Shown here one piece after another: positions 17,850 to 59,572 of a stretch of 64,000 nucleotides of DNA. The stretch spans positions 3,720,001-3,784,000 of the forward strand of contig JBHGNT010000001.1 in assembly GCA_043228905.1 (NCBI GenBank). The letters are read 5' to 3'. Each line of letters opens with the position of its first letter. Within the stretch, counting starts at the first letter, position 1. The stretch is from Azolla caroliniana (taxonomy: Eukaryota; Plantae; Polypodiophyta). Below the pieces are notes generated by a model. The model was not told the DNA's origin. It made no database searches and saw only the letters and a list, made by a program, of their open reading frames with translations. Made by a program: the position numbers and the translations under genes.

Positions 17850-18821
17850 TCATGACTGTGAAATAGGCAATTCAGGACCAATATGAACATCCAACCACGA
17901 CGCAATATCAGCGAGAATGATTGATACATTCTCATCGGGCTCACCTTGAAGGAGAGAATGCATCATTCCTTTGTAAATCCTAATGCTCTTATCGCTACTC
18001 TTAGCATTCTCATATAGAGCTTGGCTAACATTAGGGTCAGTGACCACATCAGCATCCCCATGTAGAACCAAGAAGGGAAAATCCACATCTTTCAAGTGTT
18101 TTTCGATGTAAGAAGTAGTCTTAAGAATTGCACTGACGGTGCCAAGCCTGGGTTTTCCATTATATCTCATCGGGTTATGTCGTCCCAGCTCTCTCTTTTT
18201 AGGGTCTTTTATAGACATATCCACAAGATCTTTTGTGGGTAAAATAGCCCATTTGGGAAACCAGACTACCATGAATCTTAGTATCGATACAATGGGCCAT
18301 GGTAAAAGCATATTATCTGATAACTTACACATAGGAGAGACCAAAATAGCACCATCCCAGGTTTGAGGAGCCTTGAAATGAAGCAAAAGGCAAATAGCTC
18401 CACCCATGGATTCTCCGTACAGGAAACAGGGGAGATGTGAATACTCTGTTTTCTGCTTGATAGAAGAGAAATACGAGAAACAATCTTCTGCCACCACATC
18501 TAGGTCAGGGGTGAATCCAATTAAGCCACCTGATTGGCCATGGCCTTCTAGATCTAAAGAAAATGAAGCAAGACCCATCTGCGTGAAGAGGATAGCTGTG
18601 TTCTGGAAGGTCCAGCTAGTGTTATTTCCGTAGCCATGGACCATGAAGAGGAGAGCTCTGATGGGTTTGTGTAAAGGAATCCATGACTGTGTGAAGAGCT
18701 TTATACCTCGTCCAGAGTCGATGAATCCGCGTTCATTTTTGACTCCATTGTGAGCATAGTGTTCTTCTTCAGGTGTATACCCCCATGGAAATGGTGGAAT
18801 CTGATGATCAGAAGAAGCCAT
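17850..18821 (-). CDS. Alpha/beta hydrolase, monoacylglycerol lipase / caffeoyl-shikimate-esterase family (MAGL1-like), intronless
   Basis: 323-aa ORF with HGYGNNTSWTFQ, DLEGHGQS, nucleophile elbow GESMGG, HGDADVVTDP (catalytic Asp) and GMMHSL (catalytic His). Confidence 0.95.
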   Translation of the reverse strand: MASSDHQIPPFPWGYTPEEEHYAHNGVKNERGFIDSGRGIKLFTQSWIPLHKPIRALLFMVHGYGNNTSWTFQNTAILFTQMGLASFSLDLEGHGQSGGLIGFTPDLDVVAEDCFSYFSSIKQKTEYSHLPCFLYGESMGGAICLLLHFKAPQTWDGAILVSPMCKLSDNMLLPWPIVSILRFMVVWFPKWAILPTKDLVDMSIKDPKKRELGRHNPMRYNGKPRLGTVSAILKTTSYIEKHLKDVDFPFLVLHGDADVVTDPNVSQALYENAKSSDKSIRIYKGMMHSLLQGEPDENVSIILADIASWLDVHIGPELPISQS

Positions 18822-39062: not shown

Positions 39063-39120
<58 letters not shown>

Positions 39121-39434
39121 GCCATTCGCTTGGTGGTTTACACTTTAACATCAAAGTTTAGAGAACCTTGGATCGATCCTCACCATGGGCTAGGCGCCAT
39201 GTCCCATAAATCACAATCAGTCTTCTTGAGATCTAACTATCTATCTATCTTGGAAGCGTATGTAAATGCCCTTGGTCTACACTTTGTTTCTCTTTCCATG
39301 CATACCGAGTTTCTTTTTTTTTTGCAAAAAGACGTGGGGGGGGGGGGGGGGTTTGAACTCGAATCACACCAAGTTTGAAAACGATATACTGAGCGACCCA
39401 GGATACTCTACCAAGAAACCGATGGAATGCAGAG

Positions 39435-42400
39435 ATGGAAGCATGGTAATCTGCGTCTTCTTTGTGAGGCACACAGCATGTAGAGACCGAGGGGGAGAGA
39501 GAGAGAACGACGGAAATTGCAATGTTTTGTGAACATTTTTCTGTCGAGTTGTATAATACCATGATACTCTACGAAAACAGAAATGACGGTGTTCTCAGAG
39601 TTAGAAATTGTTTTTCTTGCTGCAAGTTTAGATTCCTTATTTCTGCTCTGCAGTTATGATGATCCCACAGTCTGATTTTAAGGTTTTTACAATAGTATTT
39701 TAGTCTCTCTATGCTTTGAGCTTACGTTGTTTAAAAAATACAACTTTTAGTAAGGTAATAAACCTTGTTTAAATTTCATTCATGTGATTGATGCAGTTTT
39801 AGTAGATACCTTGATATTTGAAGGTTCTTATTCTAGATATATTGATATTGACACATCTTTATTTTAAAAGATCCCGAACATTGAAGGAATTAATGCTGTC
39901 CAATTTTAATCCTATAGTTTATCCTCTGCACGTTTCAAATCTTTCTCGAGTTCTCTTTAGAACGTTGATTTTAGCTGCGCATTTTTCTTCATAATCTAGC
40001 TTTGTTTGATATGATTTATTAGCAGATATCTCAATATTTAAAGGTTTTTGAAGATATTTTCGCTTCAATCTCAAAATTTGAAAGTTATTTTTAATTTTGT
40101 AACTAAAAATTATGATAAACTCAGATTTTTAAATAACATAAGATTTTCAAACTTTGGATATCAGGCATGTTTCCTAAACTTTAGCCTGTCTTCAGCATGA
40201 TGGCAAACACAAACATGATTCCCATGCCAAACACAGCAATCATCCGAGAGGAATTCCTGAATGAGGAATCAAATGGAATTTTTCAGCGAGAAATCAGGAA
40301 ATTCAAGCCGTGAGTATTCTGAACTCAGGGTAATGTATTTCTTCTAGAGACTATTTATATGCTTTGGCTATTTACTTTACTTTCTGTTAGGATTGATTGT
40401 GTGCATAAGATTAAATGACATATGATTAACTGTAGAAGGATTAGAGATCAGTATTCCACCTCTATTGTTGCAATAAATTGTCTTAAAATAACGTTTGTCA
40501 CCTCTATGTTTTCCTTGTGTTAAGAAACTGCTACCTTTTCTAGGGCATTTCGTCATCATAGAAAGAGACTTGCGAGGATTGTAGTTGATCACTGGTTGCA
40601 CAAGTCAAAAATGGTAAGATTACAGCTTCAATGAGATTATCTAAGGAAGTTGTAAAGCAAAAACAAATTCTACTGGAGACTAGATGATATGGAATCATAA
40701 AACTACATATTGAAATAAAGAACTTCTCTTCAGTATAGTTTCTTTTGGAAAGGAATCCATGATTTCATATCCTTGGAACTTGAAAGGAAGGGCTTTTTAT
40801 ACTCACTGTATGCTTTGAAGGCCAAAGAATTCTACATTATTGTTTTTGGAGGGGTAAAAAATCATGTGCTATATCTTTTAATATCTACATGAAAGTGCTT
40901 CAATTTCATTGAATTTGTTCATCGCCAAAGTTTATACTTGAAGCTTTACTTTCCAGTAGAAGCTATATTGACCCCTTATTTTAAAATGTTATGACAGAAA
41001 TTATTGGTGCTGAGGTTGCAAAAAATCAGTCAAAAATATAACAAGATGTATGTATAATTTCTTAATTATATTCCACTCATTATGTTTTTCTATGACCTAA
41101 TGTTGGTAATTTCAGAGGTTTGATAAGGTAATAGTTTCAAAGAGATAAATTTAAGAAATTTTTCAAAGAAATAACTTGGTGATTCTCATGGTCTTTCCAT
41201 ACTTCCAATATTTATATAAAGAAAACAACTAAAAGAGAGGACCCAAAGTAATAAAAGTATGTATTTCTCTTTAATTGGCTGGAATTTTGACATCTATCTC
41301 TAGTATAATATGAAGCAGGCAGGGACAAAATAGAACTAAGCCTTTGGTGGTGTCTTACATAATGATAGTTAGAGAGCTCATGACGACTGGTGGCGATTAG
41401 GGTTGTGGATAGTCATCCAGGTCATAGGATTGTAGATATAATTATTGATACTGATTGATTAGCCATGTTATGGCTTTGAAGGTCAGCATATACATTCCAA
41501 GTATTTTTAGTATATGATGATTATTGATTGATTGGAAGATAATCTTTTTCTGATTAAGATATTATGGATTTTGGCTGTTATTTTAGAGCAGATTATGGGT
41601 TTTAAGGAAATGAGTGTCTGGACGAGATTTAATTCTCCTTAGGAAGGAAGTATTGAATTCTGAAGATCCATTTCTCTGGGTTCTTTTTGTTACAAAAAAG
41701 AATTTCTTGATTTCTGAAGCCAATCTCTTCTGTTTGTTTTTTTTTCATGATAAGAAAGAAAAGTTTGGTTTTGGCATGTAGATTACTCTCATTTCTTTTG
41801 CCCTGTATTCCTTTTTCACACGATGGACACTCACACTATTAATGCTTGAAACCCTCCAAATTTGTTTTTATTCATTGCGTTTATGCAGTCTATGCTTCAA
41901 GGCACTAAGGAAGAGTGTGATGATAAATCGTGAAAAACTTGAGAAGAACAAGATTGCAGCTAAATTTAGGCTACGGTCAAGCATAGAGAGAGTTTTTCAT
42001 GCATGGATTACACATCACAGGATTGTACGAAGTAGACAGTCAGTAATAAATAAGCTATGTTGGATGGGTGAGTATGTCTTTCACTTAATTAGTTAAGACC
42101 CAAGTAAAAATGATCTGCAAGAATCAATTATTATATATATATTAAGAACATCCTTTTGGACTCTAAACTTGATCAATGGAACAAAAAGGATACATCAAAT
42201 TTCGAGTGCTTGCAAACTATGGCTAGTTAAATGTCAAACACTAAAAAAAATGTGGAACATAGTCTGGATTTCATCTTATTTTTTATGCCTAGATTTTTAT
42301 GTCGAAGTATTTCTATTGAAGCTTAATGAACGTTTTGCTAATGTAATAGCAGTTCTAAATAAATAAATTATACAAATACAGTAAGGCGAAGAAGGTACAC

Positions 42401-45400
42401 TGATGCAATCTGGATCTGGCGGAAACGAGTACAAGATTGTATCCGGATGCACAGAAAGCTTTTGGTAGCATATCAATTTCAAACTTTATCACTTCTCTCT
42501 ACATGCTTAGTGAATTGGCATGTCGGACTGCAACTTTGTAAGAGGAAACAGAACTTGCAAAAGCTAGCTCTTGGATTTTGGGCTCACAGAAGGCTTAGTG
42601 TTGCCTGGCATGGGTTTGTTAAATCTTTGGCTATCAGACTTGCCATCCTGAAATTGTCTGAAAAGAGAAGGCAACTATTAACAACATTATTGTTTCAGTC
42701 CTGGCATCTCTCAACAGTCTCAACAGTTACAAGTATGAGTTTGCACGTAACATTAAATATGTATTAGTCAGTATGCTATTTCTTTTTCTGATTAGTTTCT
42801 GTTAGCCTGATATATCAGGATTGCGTGAGCTACAAAGGCATGCATGCAATAAGTTGCTCAAGAGGTCTTTTATAACTTTGCAACATCATGTTCCATGGAA
42901 ACGAATCCATGACGAAAAGAAAGGGAAGGCACTCCATTTCTACCATGGTCAATTCATGCATTGTGCATACAAAGCATGGCATGATTGTATCCACTATTTT
43001 GTTTACGCAATCAGCTAAGCTGTATTTACGTAGACTTGAAGGATATGGTTTGGTGTTTTCATAAATATTGTTACAAATTCATTTAATCTATATTATTGTT
43101 CCCATTAACATTGCTTGCAGATGTCTCAATTAGGCATATCAAGACAACATTGGCTGCTGCAGCACAAACCCATCTGAGAAAAAGGCTTCTGGTATATGAT
43201 GTTGCAAATTAGTAAATCTGAAAGTGATACTGCTTTTGGATACCAATTTGTGGCTCATCCTCCATTCCTTTTGCATGCAGAGTTTTTATTATAATTTCTG
43301 GTGTAGACATATGCAATTGAAGAGAAAAGAGGTAGTTTAAAACAAACCAAACGTTTTTTCTAGAAATTATATACAAGTATAGTATGTTTATAAAAATAAT
43401 GGGTTATGTCTACTACTATGGTGCCAAATTAGTAGATGCTTCTTCTGTATCTCTTAAAGACCTTCATTTCCTATATAGTCATATATATGGGTTCTTACAT
43501 GAGGGATTGCGCGTATGGTGGATCATCATAGGTTATGATTCATGTAGCACATAACCACTCATCATATGAACACATCAGAGATGAGGCTTATCCCTAGAGC
43601 ATTAGTTAAATCGCATGGTTTAGGGTTTAAGGTATATGCTCGAAGTAAATTCTCCTGCTAAGCTATGAAAGGAAACAAATTTTATATGGAAGGGGAATTG
43701 GAGTGGTACTATATTAAGAATAACAAATATACACTCAGTATTGGAAGAGGGAAATTTGCAGTATATGAGTGGAGATGGTGGAGCAGTAGAGAAAACGATG
43801 AATTATCAACAACAAAGTAAAGTTGGTAAAAATTAAAAAGGAACTGAAATAAAGATTTTACATCCTAAACATGATTCAATAGAGAATTCATGAAGAGTGC
43901 ATTTATGTTTATTGATAAATACTTTTTCTGCATACTTCTAGATCTACACACATTTATATACCTCTAGCTCAATACTGTGCTTAAATCTGTCTTTTTATTT
44001 CATTGGCTATCATGTTTTCACTTCATCTGATAGTTTCCTCTTAATATAGGATGGTGCTATTGTGGCATATAAAAAAAGAGTTAGTTCTAGATGTATGCAG
44101 ATTTGGAGAGATCATACACAAATTCAGACACTTGCATCAAATTCATCCTTGAAGTATAATCAGGTATGATACAAAGTAGTTACTAACACTGCAGACGTAG
44201 TAGCTTATGGGCTATTACATCCAGCACCAAGGAAAAAGATAAGCTAACGTGGCCTACAGGCTATCGTATCTGGAAATATTCCTGCATATTTGACAAACTA
44301 AAATAAATAAATTACCAGGCCATCCTACAAGAATGCGGCTGAGTATCCACACAAACATTCATTTACAATGAATTGTGATTCTCATTTTTTTACTTCACCA
44401 TGAAAAAAAAACCTTAAATATTACAATGTTTGTTGCAATACCATATGTCTTCACAATCATAGCCTCTGAAATATAAAGAAGTGAACTGGTGATGTCATGA
44501 AATTTAGGATTTATGCAAACTTCCATACATAATCAAACTCCTAAAGCTACAGAAAAGATTGCTAGGACGGTTTGGCTTTGTTGCTAAAGTTAGGCAGAAA
44601 AGACCCCCCCGGATGAGGCTAGTAAACCGTATTATCAGTTATCAAGTACACTTACTCTGCAAAAAGTTATTTGGAGAAATTAAGGCAGCTCTGCAGAGAG
44701 ATTCTAAGAATACCAAGAATGAAAACAGGTCATTTCTTAATGCTCACATTGCTTAGCATGTTTGTTGCGTTTAAAGATCATTACATTTGATGACATTTTT
44801 TTTACAGGATAATTGTCTCAAATGATAACTCAAAACCAGTAAATGGCAATATTTCTTTATGGGAGGATGCTGGCAACAAAGGCAATGCGAAACATATGTT
44901 ACAGCAATACCGACTTGAGGCTGCAACTTGTTCCATGGCAGAGAATGGAGCTGTAGGGCTGCATGCTTTAAACAAGGAATCTAGGGTTACTGAAATGGTT
45001 TCTGGTAATAAAGGGAGTTCTGTTGTAGGAAATCCTATAATATTGAGTAGCAAGGTTTCTAAAACAATACGTGCTCAGCCTCGAAGGCCTGCTTATTTAA
45101 CAGAGTCGTTGAATCTAGATGCATTGGGAAAAACTCATCTTTCTGATCATTTCTTTATGGCCAATGATGCTTCTGTTTTACCTTTATATGGAGTCAAAAC
45201 CGGCGGTAAAAATGGAATTATTTCAAAGTTTTTGGGAACCAAGTCAACCTACTCTTGCAATAACTTGAAGGATTCCTTGAATATATCGGGTGAAGAAAAA
45301 TGCTTAGAGCCAGCGGTTTCCTCATGTAATACTTCCAATATTGTGTCTGAATGTTTGTCAGATCCAAAACTCATAAGAGAGGAGCTCCTATGGACAGAAG

Positions 45401-46062
45401 ATATGCTATGCAATTTCAGGAAACTTGAAGAAAAGCTGTCTGTTAAAGGAGCAGTGCTATCTGCATTAAAGAACAGACATCATTCAGGTTATTTCAGGTT
45501 CCCACTTAATCATATTTGATGGAAAGCTTATGCAAAGTTCAGAGAGAAATTGAAGGTTACTGATCCCAAACTTTCTGATGTCATATAAATCATTATATAT
45601 GTGAGTATGGAAGTGAATGATGCTGCTAATAGTGCTTCTTTTTGCCGATTCTTTCTTTTCTTTTCTTTTTTCATGATAATACCATGACTGCCTATATTTA
45701 ACTGAAGATGAGCCATTGTGACTCACTTGCTCCTCTATGATGTAATGTTTCTATGATTCAACTTCATATGCGATGTGCAGTTCCCCTGGAATATGCATGT
45801 TTCCAAATTGACATAAAATTTAGTCATTATAAACCAGTTAAATAGCAGTGATGATTTTATTCTTCATAAAAAGTGATTGCTTTATTCTTTGTGAGCAGTG
45901 ATGGACGAGAAAGTAAAAGGTGTACAGATGAGATATCTAGAACAGAAAATTCTAGGTCTACAGGACAGACATTCAGTTTTGTTGCCGACAACTCAAGAAC
46001 TCACCAGGTGTACTGCACATGAACTTCACAAGAAAGAAAAAGTAATACTGCATCTTGATTAA
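39435..46062 (+). CDS. SFI1-like protein with Sfi1 centrin-binding repeats (~747 aa)
   Basis: Phase-consistent exons 39435-39445, 40196-40309, 40544-40613, 40998-41047, 41889-42067, 42382-42732, 42819-42986, 43121-43191, 43281-43331, 44050-44163, 44508-44728, 44808-45487, 45899-46062. Repeated A-x7-LL-x3-(F/L)-x2-W units are present, e.g. AYQFQTLSLLSTCLVNW and AQTHLRKRLLSFYYNFW. Confidence 0.8.
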
Positions 46063-47430
46063 TACAGTAACTTTCCCAGTCATGTCATGTAGAAAATCCT
46101 GATTATGTACTGTATATAGTCTACAAGTCAGATAATAATGTCTCATGGAAAGGTTGATCATAGTTAAATTAAATATGTACACATATATCCTTGTAAATTT
46201 CAGCAAAACGGCAAGCAGAACCATGCTATTGTAAACTTGGTGCAGTCATTGTGCAAACACTAGAGGATACACAACACAATTATCAACGTAATTAAGCTAG
46301 TAGTTTACATCATATTTAGTGATAGTCTAAATTACCTTAATTACTTTATGGTATAAATGAGAAGCCACTATAAAGTGTAGGGAATGTTGACTCCTAATGA
46401 CAGTAACCATCAATATTTATTGATAGCTTAATTACCTTAATTGTATTGCACACTACATGAGAGGCCATTATGAATTGTGAGAAATGTTCACTCCTAATGA
46501 CAATCACAATCAATTTCCACATTCATGATTGTTACTGAGAAATGTGTAAGTGTTGGAAAGCCATCAGTTAAGATCATACAACTCAGGCACCATTATAAAT
46601 TGTGAAATGAATAAATTCAACGAATGATAATATACAAGTACACAATTTCCATGTAAACCTCTGAGATATACATATGAAGCATTCAACATCAAGAGACGTT
46701 TTACAAACTTGTGATTTGATAGAATAACGAGAAATTCCTCCAATGAAACTTTCATACCTACATTAGATACTTAAATTCAGCCCTTGATCACACCCACATT
46801 TTGTAAGCAAACATCATTAGAACTAAAGAGCCGAATCACACAATATTAGATAACTAAAGAGCCGAATCACATGATATTAGATAAGACAAATTATTCACCC
46901 TAGTAAAACTTTCCCTCAAATGCAGATATAGACTGCAAGACATTGACAATTCACTGAACCCAGATGAGATATAGACTGCAAGAGGACATACCCAATTATA
47001 TGTGAGAAGAATTTATGACAGCAATGAACAGCCTATGCAACTGAAATCCACCAAAACTACTACTTTCTTCAACAATGATTCACAAAACTGTCAAACAAGT
47101 AACCAAGAGAGTTCATTGGACCTAGATGGATAGAGCACAAAAGACCAGGTATGAAAACAAAGAATTTAAAGGAATGACGGTATGGCTAAACTCCAGTAAG
47201 TTTTTGTTATCCTCTTTCCACAAAAGAAAATCACTACGACCTCAAAAACAAGTAGCTAGGAGATTTGATTACAAAAAGAGCTCAAATAAATAAAAAGAAC
47301 AAAGAGATCATTTCCTAATAAAACAAAAGGTTGTTGCACGGATAGTCTTTGCTCAACTAAAAATGAAGGGGATTTTCCTACTAAAAAAGAACAAAAAAGA
47401 TGTGGCATCTGATTTTTTGGTTTTGTTCTC

Positions 47431-50400
47431 CTATTTTCCGCCCAAGGTTGGGAATTGATTTGGATCCTCAATGGAGGGAGCTATTCCCCCTTCCCTGGAG
47501 TAACCGTGTGCCCCCCCACTATAACCACCTCTGCTGCCTCCACGGCCTCTGCCCCCTCCACGGCCACCCCTCCTGCCTCCACTGAAGTACTCCCCTCCAT
47601 CAGCAGGTTTCAAGAATTCATTGATGCTCAAAGGCTATAAAAGAAAAGATAACCTTCAGGCCAAACCCTAACAAAAACGTACACTCCAGAAAATGAAGTA
47701 AAGATATACCTTCCGAGATTTCTCTTCCTTGCCCAATACCTCCTTTTTCTTGCCTTTATCCAGACCCTAAATATGTCAATACGAAAATTCTTAACAGCTG
47801 AATAAATACCAGAAAACTTGCAGAAGTGTTTTTGGTTTTAGGATCCAGGTTTTAAGACTATTGATCTAGGTTAAGAATATGTGTCTTTGCAGCATGCACA
47901 CTGTCCTGTAGCTTGAATCTGGGTAATGATTGAATCTTTACTTTGTGTGCTTCATTATATCAATTCCCATTTACATGCTCTTACCAGTTTTGCAAACACC
48001 TCCTCTTCGTTCTTTCTCTCAACTAGCTGCATTGCTTCAAAATCCTTATCCAGTGTGACTTTTCTTTCCTTAGATTTCAAGGCCTCTAAGGCCTTCCTTT
48101 TCTCACTTAATACCTTCTCATACTCCTCCAAAGTCATTTCCTGCATCACAATAAAGATAAAAATGAAAGTTGGAATTTAGCAAAGCCTATCAAGAAACAC
48201 TACTTGAAAATAAGAAAATAAAACTATACTTTATCCTCTTCCTCCTCTGGCTCATTCTTTTTCTCTACATCTTCAGCCTCTGGTTGCAACTCTGGCTTGT
48301 TCTCTAGCTTGTCTACACCCTCCGCTAAACCAAGTTTTTCATCTTCCACTACACCTGCCTCTGGAATGTCTCTGGAATAAGAGTAAGTAACCGTAGCGAG
48401 CATTAAATATCAATTCTAACCAGATAACTTTCACTGATGTACCTTACCAGAAATGTGCTCATATAAACAAGAAGTCACTTACTGTACACCATTTTGATCG
48501 ACCTCAGAACCCCAATTAGCACGACCACCCCCTTCTCGCTTTATTTCAGTCCTGAAAGCAAAATATAGACAAAATACAACATGAAAGAAGTAACTCCCTA
48601 AACATTGAGAGTTTCAAAGTCATCTATTTGGTAGTGGCAAATAAGTCCTTTATCTCAGTTTCAGCATTAAAGTGAATTATTTTTAAATGACTTTGTTCTA
48701 TTTAGAAACTATTGACTGCTTTTTAATAGAAATGTTTGGAGACTACAGCGAAATTTACAGTCTAAAATCCCTTCGAAAAATGGCTGGCCAACACTTTTCT
48801 AATTACACTTCTTTACAAAATGACGAGGATCTTTTTTAACCATTTTTTTAAATTTTCAAGGCTCACTATAAACTTTTAATGGGTAATTTTAGGTACTGAT
48901 TTGGAAATCTGAAGACAACCAAATAAAGCAATAGCATACCCTCGTCCAGTGCCGCTTCTTCGGTCATATTCTCGCGGGCGACGTTCTTCTTGATCTCCTG
49001 AGAAGCCATATCCACGGCCTCCTCGGCCACGTCCACGGCCACGAACTCCTCTACCACTGCCACTGCCACTGCCGCCTCCATTATACTGGTTTCCACCTTC
49101 CTCTGGTACACCAGCAGCAGCTTCTCCTCCCCTTCGGTAATTGTTAAAGCTACGGTCCACATATTCATTTCCTTGGGGTCCACCTTCTCGAATAGGACGG
49201 GGATTGAAATTACCTTCAACATTTCTCTCTCGATAGCCACCTCTGCCCCCACCTCTACCTCCACCTCGACCCCTCCCACCCTCAGATTGAGCTTCTCTCA
49301 CTGCCAAACCACAACAAGGGTATGATCACTTCATATTGAGTCCATGTTTGACTTCATTCAAATAAAACAAAATTTTTTTGTAGCATTCAATGCATGTGAA
49401 ATATGAATCAACGAACATAACAAGAGTATGACCATTTAATATTTATGTCATGCTTGACTATAGTCAAGAAGAATAATTGCCTTTCGCATTCATTTCAAAC
49501 GTAACTATGTACATGAAATACGAGTCGAGCACAATAAAAGTATTGAATTCCTTTACCTACGAACAGAAATCCCTTTTGCATTGAATTTCTGAGGAATATT
49601 ATTTGAACAAATATTAATTTCACTTATTCTTGAATTAATGTGGAATATACTCCGAACAAAACAATTTCTGTTTAACCCTTAAAGACACCACAACCAGATA
49701 ACGCAAACTGAAGGTGATCCACAAGACAACATGTACAAGTTCAGTGAGGTGCAAACCACAAAAATCTTCTTTCTTGTAATTTTAGCCTCATACAAGCATT
49801 GAGCGACAACGCCTAGCAAACTTTGTACTTGCTCAAAGTCTACTCCACTACATAGCAACCAGACACCCCCCCCCAAAAGGGTATGAACTAGAAAGAGAAA
49901 TAATCATAGGGAATGTTTAAAATTAGATACAGTTTGCTGAAGACAAAAAAAAGAAAAGGAACATGGAGGCGAAAAGTATCATCAAATTAGAAACTAGAAA
50001 TTAAGCTTGCACAACCTTAGCTCTACAAGGTAAACAAAAATGCAGCATATCCAAGCATGAAATCTACATCTTAACATTATAATCGGTCAAAACAATGGAT
50101 AATAACAAGAGGATTAAAGCCTTAAACCTTGAATCTAGTCATAAGCCATGTGTCCCTGTGTCCTAAGCAGATCAGAGAGAAACTATAAATGGAGAGAAAA
50201 AAAGGAGACAGAATAAAGAGCACAAAACGACCTCTAAATTAAGAGAGAAAAGTAGACTCCAAATGAACGAGAAAAAAAAATGAACTGTGAGTAAAGAGGA
50301 AAAACTAAAACGCGCTCCAATAAAGAGATAAAACTACATCCGAATTAAGAAAACTTTATCTGAATAAGAGATAAACGAGAAAAAGTCTAAATGAAGACAG

Positions 50401-57276: not shown

Positions 57277-59572
57277 CTAGGATGACACCGCAATGAAGCT
57301 TTGCAAAGGCACGATCAGGATCGTGATATCATCAAGGTTGCCTCGAGTGCATGACTTGTGAATGAGCTTCTCGCAAATGTCCACTTTCAAAGAAGATGAA
57401 GACGAAGAAGAAGAAGAAGAAGAAGAAACAGAGGGTTTTCCTTTACTATGCATTGTATAGTCACTGTCTCTTGAACGGCTTGAATCCCAAAGTTTCTGGG
57501 CCTTGCATGGCCCTGGTGTCTGTGGCTCCCCCCCATACTCCAACAACATTTCTCTAGCACAATCCACTGCTTCTTGATCACTCACCTACACATCAAATGA
57601 GCCACTCAAAACGAATTAACAATTTAACCCAATAACATTGCAAAGTGTATCATTTTCATATACGTTCTTCTTGTAGCTAAAAAAGAAATTAGTTAGTACC
57701 TTGTCCCACAGTCCATCCGTCGCGAGGATTAAGAATTCACACTCTTCTGATACCATCAATTGTCTGACTTCTGGCTCGGCTGAAACCCATCCTTTCAAAT
57801 TTGCATCTCCAAATCCCCGTGTCACGGCCAATGTGCTTTGTAACCTCCACACTCCATTGAAGCAATCTACATAGCCACCCTGGACAATGTTGAGAGTTTT
57901 GTCAATATGTTGTGATTTCTTTCAATGATATTGGCACACACTGAACAAATTGTCCATACCGAAATGGAATATATATATTTATGATGATGGAATAGACTAT
58001 GTTCGGGTTTTCAACTTGGGACATAGGATTAAATATTTGAGAGCGGTTATTTCCCACTTGGATGAATATATGGAATCTACAACAACAGAAAAACTGATGA
58101 CCTAATTGAATGCTCCACAATGTCTAAAAATTTCCTATCGAGAAATTGGAGAATGTAGGGTTAGGGTACATGGTGTAGGGCATAGGAATTAGGGTTGATT
58201 CTTTACTATCAATCTTTTGATGTTGATATCATGGGATTGATTGTGATATATAGTTCAAGAAGAAGGAATGGGGACTCTCACCAGGTCCTCGATACGTTGT
58301 CTTTCCTCATCATTGCTTGCTCGATGCAATGTGTTAAGGGCCTCAGCTTTGCCACCTCTAGACAAAACCGCCTTACAATCACCAGCATTTGCCACAACCA
58401 GATGACCATCCTTCAATAAGACGGACAAAGAACAAGCCCCACTACTAGTATTCTGTGGAAGAATCATAAACCACCAAGAGTACATTAGTAACTAGCCTTC
58501 ATCTAGTTTAATTCTTTCATGTTGCTTCATACAAGGAAACAGATGTGGGTAATTCATTGTAACAACTGTTAAAACATTATACCTTAGCCAGGAACTCTGA
58601 GTCCAAAGCCATATAACCATCCCTCATCACGTCGTTTAAACTTTCCAATTCTGCATTTTGCTTCTCCATTGCAGCTAAAATGTGTCTCCCAAGGTTTTGG
58701 GCAGCGAATGTGGCCGCATGACGACCCCCATGCCCATCAAAAACCCCGAAGAATGCCTATTTCCAACCAAAATAAAGCCTTGAATTGATTTGCACCGAAA
58801 TCTAGAGCACAACAACTATTTAACAAGCATCTAAAAAACTAACTGTACAAGTAATGTAATGGACATTCAGTGGTATGCACAACCAGAATTTAGAGATGAA
58901 AAAATGCAATCCACAACAAACAAAAGCCAAAACATCCAAACAATTACCTACCTGTCCTGGCTTTCCTTGGAAATCAATAAGGGCTACATGAGTATCTTCC
59001 ATATACTCTTTTCTTCCTTTCTTTGCGCACACTCCATATTTTTCATTCTCGTGGCTGTGAGCCTCGGGACTAAAATCTTCTTGCCGATGTAGCCCGAAAT
59101 GTTTCACTTTTCCGAAAGAAGCTAATCTTCCCAATTCGGGTATGGCCAATTTAGCTGGCCTTTTCCTTTTAAGGATAGAAGAGGATAACCTGACATCTAT
59201 TCCTTGTTGTTGTTCTTCTTCTCGTTCTTCTTTACGATTCTCTCTGTTCTCTTTGGAAGGATCGTTTCGAGAAGGCTCGAAGAAAGTATTACTAACCCAA
59301 GTTTTCCTTATTAATGGGCTTTGTGCATAGTTTTGAATACAAGAAGAAGGAGAAGAGGAAGGGGAAGACTTGGCTTGTTTTTTCGTAGCATCTGCGGGCA
59401 GCAAGTCAGATAAAGCAGACCTAGCGAAGGTCGAGAGAGAGGGAGCACCTGTTGGGGAGGAGAAAGAGCTGGCTATGACTTTGCTCAGCATTTTATGGAG
59501 AGACGAAGCAGCAGAGGAAGAGGAAGAGGAAGAGGAAGGGGAGGGTTGAAGAGGGGAGGCACAAGAAGCCAT
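57277..59572 (-). CDS. Protein phosphatase 2C, clade B (AP2C-like MAPK phosphatase), ~484 aa
   Basis: Exons 59572-58952, 58756-58583, 58452-58282, 57879-57700, 57585-57277. It has the KIM docking motif LKRKRPAKLAIP and intact catalytic motifs MED, FDGHGG, NAGDC, LAVTRGFGD, TDGLWD and DDIT. Confidence 0.95.

Follow-up and report, generated by a model that had tools for sequence, protein, structure and literature searches.

The 64,000-nucleotide stretch of Azolla caroliniana DNA analyzed here, called the window in what follows (assembly GCA_043228905.1, contig JBHGNT010000001.1, positions 3,720,001 to 3,784,000 of the forward strand), contains a real, expressed and spliced gene of 12 coding exons, located at 40197-46062 on the + strand. 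On the basis of motif, period and predicted helix, this fern gene is filed in the class of Sfi1-repeat proteins, and its product is a candidate centrin scaffold. It is best described as an unannotated addition to this known class. The best explanation of the sequence, which we consider probable, is a helical protein with Sfi1-type repeats serving as a putative centrin-binding scaffold; with about the same assurance, the repeats themselves are expected to bind centrin. In the searchable literature, which leaves most subscription journals outside, an SFI1-type protein or a centrin scaffold is named in no land plant. In the same literature, SFI1 is never combined with Marchantia and, judged by titles and occurrence counts, is combined with Physcomitrella only in passing mentions. 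An expressed candidate with mapped repeats is a protein that plant cell biologists can tag, knock out and assay for centrin binding.

Gene model and transcripts

Splice sites read from the DNA, together with spliced contigs, define a coding sequence that starts with an ATG at 40197 and ends with a TAA at 46060-46062 (Table 1). It comprises 743 codons (2229 bases), and phase arithmetic over the exon list gives consistent phases and 0 internal stops. GT..AG borders are found at every intron. The initial annotation, made from the sequence alone, had assembled short open reading frame (ORF) fragments without phase conflict into about 747 amino acids encoded by 13 exons. The contig junctions bear out the splicing in phase and a length close to the proposed one, but the number of exons is 12. 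The supernumerary 11-base first exon at 39435 finds no support, and in the genomic sequence an in-frame TAG (40182-40184) precedes the ATG.

Transcript evidence comes from contigs of four public runs aligned to 40400-46200. Intron-free contigs from X7, X8 and X17 give ten of the junctions directly. The eleventh, 40309>40544, is given by a contig overhang ending ...TTCAAGCC. Overhangs beyond the exon at 40544 measure 175-255 bases, which is long enough for the 113-base first coding exon plus further upstream sequence. Because only RNA yields intron-less contigs, the gene is transcribed and spliced; a lack of spliced transcripts, which the initial annotation had named as a refutation, is not what is seen. 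The source runs number at least three, represent two or three related organisms and were made with no selection for reproductive tissue.

Some variation in splicing is also visible. In the related species represented by X17, exon 4 (179 bases) is skipped in some contigs, which would break the frame on the window's sequence, and an alternative acceptor is used at 42350. Skipping of exon 8 in the same species (43191>44050, 51 bases) leaves the frame intact and removes the tryptophan half of repeat unit 10. X7 also contains unspliced contigs lying over introns (43446-43657 and 44135-44535). Upstream of the gene, a (GA/CT)n microsatellite at about 39065-39125, some 1.1 kb 5' of the start codon, accounts for SLSLSL / ERERER runs in the ORF list.

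Repeat array and predicted helix

The consensus of the yeast repeats is AX7LLX3F/LX2WK/R, where L is numbered 14, F 19 and W 22 (Kilmartin 2003, PMC2173958). Seven 17-residue motifs of this kind had been quoted in the initial annotation. All seven are found where implied on the + strand (Table 1), one of them being interrupted by an intron. They are part of an array of about 11 repeat units (10-12), with anchors at codons 55, ~87, 117, 150, 183, 216, 245, 275, 308, 341 and 370. The units are spaced by 29-33 residues, and five times by exactly 33. Each step between the tryptophans at codons 117, 150 and 183, as well as that between 308 and 341, equals 33 codons, in agreement with the earlier claim that two adjacent units are exactly 33 amino acids apart. 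The repeat period is 23-35 residues in the yeast protein and 33 in human SFI1 (PMC2173958). The fern spacing thus falls inside the yeast range and matches the human value.

The first 370 codons contain 13 of the 15 tryptophans. An alanine stands at W-16 for 6 of the 13 N-terminal tryptophans, alanine making up only 6% of residues overall, and the residue at W-3 is hydrophobic in each of the nine units scored. A relaxed motif, A-x12-[FLIVMYW]-x2-W, occurs 6 times, a number that none of 100,000 residue shuffles reached (mean 0.30, maximum 5).

A repeat profile was built from 28 units of 33 residues, cut around the anchor tryptophans in the window's exons and in three fern proteins. These units fill 33 columns with no internal gap and give the HMMER consensus rkqliAlrfwrkrllsccfqaWh, whose A6, L14, L15, F19, W22 and h23 correspond to the published motif at all six positions. 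A MAFFT alignment of all exon pieces with the full-length proteins, which illustrates the internal repetition by placing several exons on the wrong repeat units, was not used for the profile. Between the window and L001, an orthologous contig from a Joint Genome Institute (JGI) metagenome, 39 of 47 cells are identical at the key positions 6, 14, 15, 19 and 22 (83%), against 135 of 219 (62%) at the other repeat positions (one-sided Fisher p 0.003). Since the key positions are better kept than the rest, selection acts on the motif itself.

The structural predictions agree with a long helix. Only one proline occurs across the repeat region (exons 2-9). With AlphaFold2, exon 5 (116 residues, 3.5 units) is modelled as one helix over residues 2-115, with a mean predicted local distance difference test (pLDDT) value of 74. 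The orthologue from Adiantum capillus-veneris is predicted helical over residues 1-422, save for short breaks and a longer gap at 75-98, which is suspected to be an artefact of the gene model. Its residues 424-547 are predicted to be disordered and are followed by a helix at 548-596; the two C-terminal helices have pLDDT values of 81-95. Both models and the proline count agree with a continuous helix poor in proline, as in SFI1. A Foldseek search with the exon 5 model returned no match, as expected of a lone helix. Within each repeat, W-7, W-3 and W would share one helix face because their spacing is i, i+4, i+7. An L8-L4-W1 triad is described for Sfi1-centrin contacts (PMC3871271), and the W-7/W-3/W residues of the fern protein would form the same triad.

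The low-complexity region and the helical C-terminus announced by the initial annotation are both present. Conservation with Adiantum and L001 extends to the last ~100 residues (KLIREELLWTEDML... to ...ILHLD), which match no Pfam family.

Table 1. Coding exons of the fern gene, with the repeat units they encode, the contig-supported junctions (donor>acceptor) and the counterparts found in other ferns. Percentages are amino-acid identities.
Exon	Position	Strand	Content	Transcript support	Comparison with other ferns
1	40197..40309	+	Short N-terminal segment, 37 codons + 2 bases; donor CC/GTGAGT	Overhangs ending ...GGAAATTCAAGCC joined to 40544 in X7, X8, X17	Homologous exon 1102-1215 in L001
2	40544..40613	+	Unit 1, AFRHHRKRLARIVVDHW (40545-40595)	40613>40998, in three runs	86% in L001; Ceratopteris counterpart ALRRHRKRLARIVVDQW
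3	40998..41047	+	Beginning of degenerate unit 2	Contig junctions both sides	Aligns with RLLVLRLQK in Adiantum and Ceratopteris proteins
4	41889..42067	+	Unit 3, AAKFRLRSSIERVFHAW (41956-42006)	41047>41889, 42067>42382	81% in L001; dN/dS 0.14
5	42382..42732	+	Units 4-7; anchors W150, W183, F216, W245; motifs 42468-42518 and 42567-42617	42732>42819	Best conserved repeat block; 27 invariant columns across four ferns
6	42819..42986	+	Unit 8 (degenerate, L for W) and unit 9, ALHFYHGQFMHCAYKAW (42929-42979)	Contig junctions; at 42986>43121, X7 has AC for AT, Tyr either way	Orthologous blocks in fern proteins and L001
7	43121..43191	+	Unit 10, first half (AQTHLRKRLL); motif part 43162-43191	42986>43121, 43191>43281	WHDYV common to window and Adiantum
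8	43281..43331	+	Unit 10, second half (SFYYNFW); motif part 43281-43301	43191>43281, 43331>44050	
9	44050..44163	+	Unit 11, AIVAYKKRVSSRCMQIW (44056-44106)	44163>44508	63% to L001 5162-5242
10	44508..44728	+	Basic helical segment; possible twelfth unit without tryptophan	44728>44808	58% in L001; Adiantum counterpart A-x7-LL-x3-F-x2-I
11	44808..45487	+	Low-complexity linker (~180 residues, S/N/G/P-rich) to ~45350, then first conserved C-terminal helix (KLIREELLWTEDML...)	45487>45899	54% in L001
12	45899..46062	+	Second C-terminal helix and TAA; end ...ILHLD	45487>45899, in X7 and X17	Adiantum end alike

Fern orthologues and similarity to SFI1

An exhaustive phmmer search with exon 5 against 1.84 billion representative sequences gave only three credible matches, all of them fern proteins: KAI5072405.1 from Adiantum capillus-veneris (652 aa), KAH7415718.1 from Ceratopteris richardii (365 aa) and P0121, a product from a JGI metagenome. 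The three proteins, annotated as hypothetical, align piecewise and in the same order to the open stretches at 40.1-46.1 kb. On L001 there is a collinear orthologue in which exons 1-11 keep their order and amino-acid identities are 47-86%. Comparison of the window with L001 over 314 ungapped repeat-region codons gives nonsynonymous (dN) and synonymous (dS) divergences of 0.19 and 0.59. The ratio of 0.33 points, for these codons, to a protein that evolves fast but under purifying selection. The gene spans 53-56 kb in Adiantum and Ceratopteris versus 5.9 kb in the window. A scan of metagenomes with the exon 5 alignment added only L002, a 93% identical near relative. Word-indexed searches with the Adiantum protein and with the family profile recovered the Adiantum protein itself only. 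P0124, a repetitive coiled coil of 2133 residues, matched exon 5 in seven stretches (E 4e-8); no tryptophan is visible in it, and the match was taken as compositional and set aside.

The public gene models of the orthologues look imperfect. The Adiantum model lacks repeat unit 1 and has, at the exon 4/5 junction, a poorly modelled insert of 23 residues (~76-98) absent in other ferns. The Ceratopteris model ends after unit 10, at residue 365, and P0121 is a prokaryote-style gene call in which an intron was read through at ~122-150.

Similarity to SFI1 itself was sought in several ways. When the repeat profile was run against 177,635 distinct sequences of the PDB, the top sequence was yeast SFI1p (2doq_D), aligned in register, A6 falling on A43 and W22 on W59; for a target named beforehand, its E value would amount to ~1e-5 per sequence. 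In the ESM Atlas, the clusters closest to the Adiantum orthologue are those of SFI1 (scores 0.88-0.91, with 179-190 of 256 features shared), and 9 of 30 matches carry PF08457. According to the calibration of this resource, most matches that share at least 170 features belong to the named family.

Several results weigh against the SFI1-type reading. The 2doq_D match has an E value of 1.5, which for a blind search lacks significance. With the window's exon 5 alone, the ESM Atlas returned unnamed clusters only. Ten exon translations and the three fern proteins, including the full-length Adiantum and Ceratopteris sequences, gave no match to Pfam PF08457 (Sfi1) at E values up to 10, so that the first check proposed in the initial annotation fails. 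Phmmer with the Adiantum protein and a search with the exon 5 family profile both found no match in the PDB. The published strict criteria call for AX12[FL]X2W[KRH] at least three times, or for the tandem [FWL]X2W[KRH]X21-34[FWL]X2W[KRH] (PMC2173958). A scripted count finds the first pattern once, at 42468-42518, and reading of the per-tryptophan table gives no match to the second. The mismatch comes from the fern units themselves, which often have Y, M, V or I at position 19 and often H or a non-basic residue at position 23. The repeats number ~11 versus 21-23 in yeast and human SFI1. Finally, the exhaustive search, the two word-indexed searches and the metagenome search found no relatives outside ferns, be it in angiosperms, bryophytes, lycophytes or gymnosperms. 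The phylogenetic profile proposed by the initial annotation is thus uninformative: at the sensitivity of these searches a clear angiosperm orthologue is missing, as had been predicted, and so are those of the bryophytes, lycophytes and gymnosperms.

It should, however, be noted that true SFI1 proteins are highly divergent: those of two Saccharomyces species are only 24.5% identical, with no conservation beyond the repeats (PMC2173958). Failure of a profile search is therefore weak evidence against membership. The available data suggest that the Sfi1 repeat class reaches beyond what PF08457 detects. As for the SFI1-like character proposed at the outset, it holds for the Sfi1 consensus, the spacing, the predicted helix and the language-model neighbours, and not for the Pfam match. 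Three sub-threshold Pfam matches, DDE_Tnp_1 (E 0.0024, exon 4), Trefoil and RBB1NT, were rejected as chance.

Putative role and rival explanations

Comparison with known systems helps to place the protein. Like yeast and human SFI1, it has an A-x7-LL-x3-F/L-x2-W array with a period of ~33 residues, a continuous, nearly proline-free helix and terminal domains that are not conserved. It differs from SFI1, which has 946-1242 residues, by its size (743 residues) and its halved repeat number, by the residues at positions 19 and 23 and by the lack of a PF08457 match. At the C-terminus it has a conserved module of two helices, for which no similarity to known SFI1 C-termini is detectable. Tetrahymena Sfr1-13, the Paramecium centrin-binding proteins and Toxoplasma TgSFI1 were, as here, placed in the family solely on the strength of the repeat motif. 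These proteins are centrin scaffolds at basal bodies or contractile lattices; they have no sequence relation to the fern protein outside the motif, and their repeat numbers and sizes differ.

The protein consists of a short N-terminal segment, a predicted helix of ~340 residues with 10-12 repeats, a low-complexity linker predicted to be disordered and a conserved pair of C-terminal helices. Each repeat would expose its hydrophobic W-7, W-3 and W on one helix face, surrounded by basic residues. It is this surface that a single centrin molecule grips with its C-terminal lobe in yeast and human SFI1. The likeliest mechanism would therefore be a centrin-decorated rod, ~50 nm long and bearing roughly ten centrins, that would build or anchor centrin-containing fibres. 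A paper citing Li et al. 2006 relates that the C-termini of yeast Sfi1 join molecules tail to tail. By analogy, the fern C-terminal helices may serve for self-association or anchoring, and we infer that filaments could form.

Ferns have multiflagellate swimming sperm, for which centrin scaffolding may be relevant. Centrin has long served as a marker of the blepharoplast and basal bodies of fern sperm, both of which are labelled by centrin antibodies in the water fern Marsilea (PMC4947347), and ciliate Sfi1-repeat proteins are located at basal bodies (PMC5112337). By analogy with these systems, a centrin scaffold of the sperm basal-body apparatus, as the initial annotation had proposed, would be a sensible reading, and such a role may be entertained, though only tentatively. 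A narrower proposal is that the protein is the land-plant counterpart of SFI1, organising centrin in the blepharoplast, the basal bodies and the multilayered structure of swimming plant sperm, too divergent for Pfam and for standard annotation, and kept only where centrioles arise de novo. This proposal seems to us rather doubtful.

A centrin scaffold could also have a general role outside sperm, for instance in the nucleus or at microtubule-organising sites that lack centrioles, together with vegetative expression. Such expression is possible since the spliced contigs come from at least three runs of two or three related organisms, unselected for reproductive tissue, and centrins also take part in DNA repair and mRNA export (PMC8622359). 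In Marsilea, however, centrin marks the basal bodies and blepharoplast (PMC4947347), and in animals and ciliates SFI1-type proteins are found at centrioles and basal bodies. On balance, a general role of this kind is somewhat unlikely. The protein might also bind centrin through Sfi1 repeats without being an SFI1 orthologue, as a separate or lineage-specific member of the class comparable to POC5 or to the SFR and centrin-binding proteins of ciliates, possibly at another cellular site. Because true SFI1 proteins are dissimilar outside the repeats, orthology cannot be read from sequence. Half the usual repeat number and the want of a detected non-fern relative would fit such a member, and several organisms have many Sfi1-repeat proteins (PMC5112337). 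POC5 resembles the fern protein in combining Sfi1-like repeats with coiled-coil segments; it comes from centriole-bearing organisms and was shown to bind centrin specifically, not calmodulin. Nevertheless, as POC5 is described, its architecture is another one, with three repeats (one tandem pair) flanked by coiled coils and, in addition, a 21-residue signature domain, whereas the fern protein has one uninterrupted array of 10-12 units, as SFI1 does. Moreover, the closest language-model clusters carry the name SFI1 and not POC5. A non-orthologous binder therefore appears improbable.

A last explanation is that the protein is a fern-specific basic helical repeat protein that binds calmodulin, another calmodulin-like protein or nothing at all, its likeness to Sfi1 being convergent. 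EF-hand proteins commonly target basic amphipathic helices anchored by W and L, plants have large families of calmodulin-like (CML) proteins, and an Arabidopsis centrin is classed as CML20. CML19 is likewise an Arabidopsis centrin (PMC8622359). Convergence would also account for the missing Pfam Sfi1 match, for the failure of the strict published patterns and for a PDB match that is not significant alone. It has to be reconciled, however, with the agreement of six separate consensus positions in register and period, with the rank of Sfi1p as top among all the PDB sequences compared and with the dominance of SFI1 clusters among the language-model neighbours. These observations make convergence quite improbable and argue for the putative centrin-binding scaffold as the preferred reading.

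Other genes lie in the window. An intron-less alpha/beta-hydrolase gene at 17850-18821 on the - strand (Pfam Hydrolase_4, E 6e-56) resembles monoacylglycerol lipase / caffeoylshikimate esterase in type. The best named relatives of this neighbouring gene are from Adiantum (70%) and Ceratopteris (68%), followed by lycophytes and bryophytes at 55-57%, an order that by itself assigns the window to a fern. Two long open stretches on the - strand, at 48879-49307 and 58823-59572, had no Pfam match as single pieces. Rich in RGG/GGR and serine, they are likely to be exons of adjacent genes; at the end of the second stands a motif typical of PP2C phosphatases.

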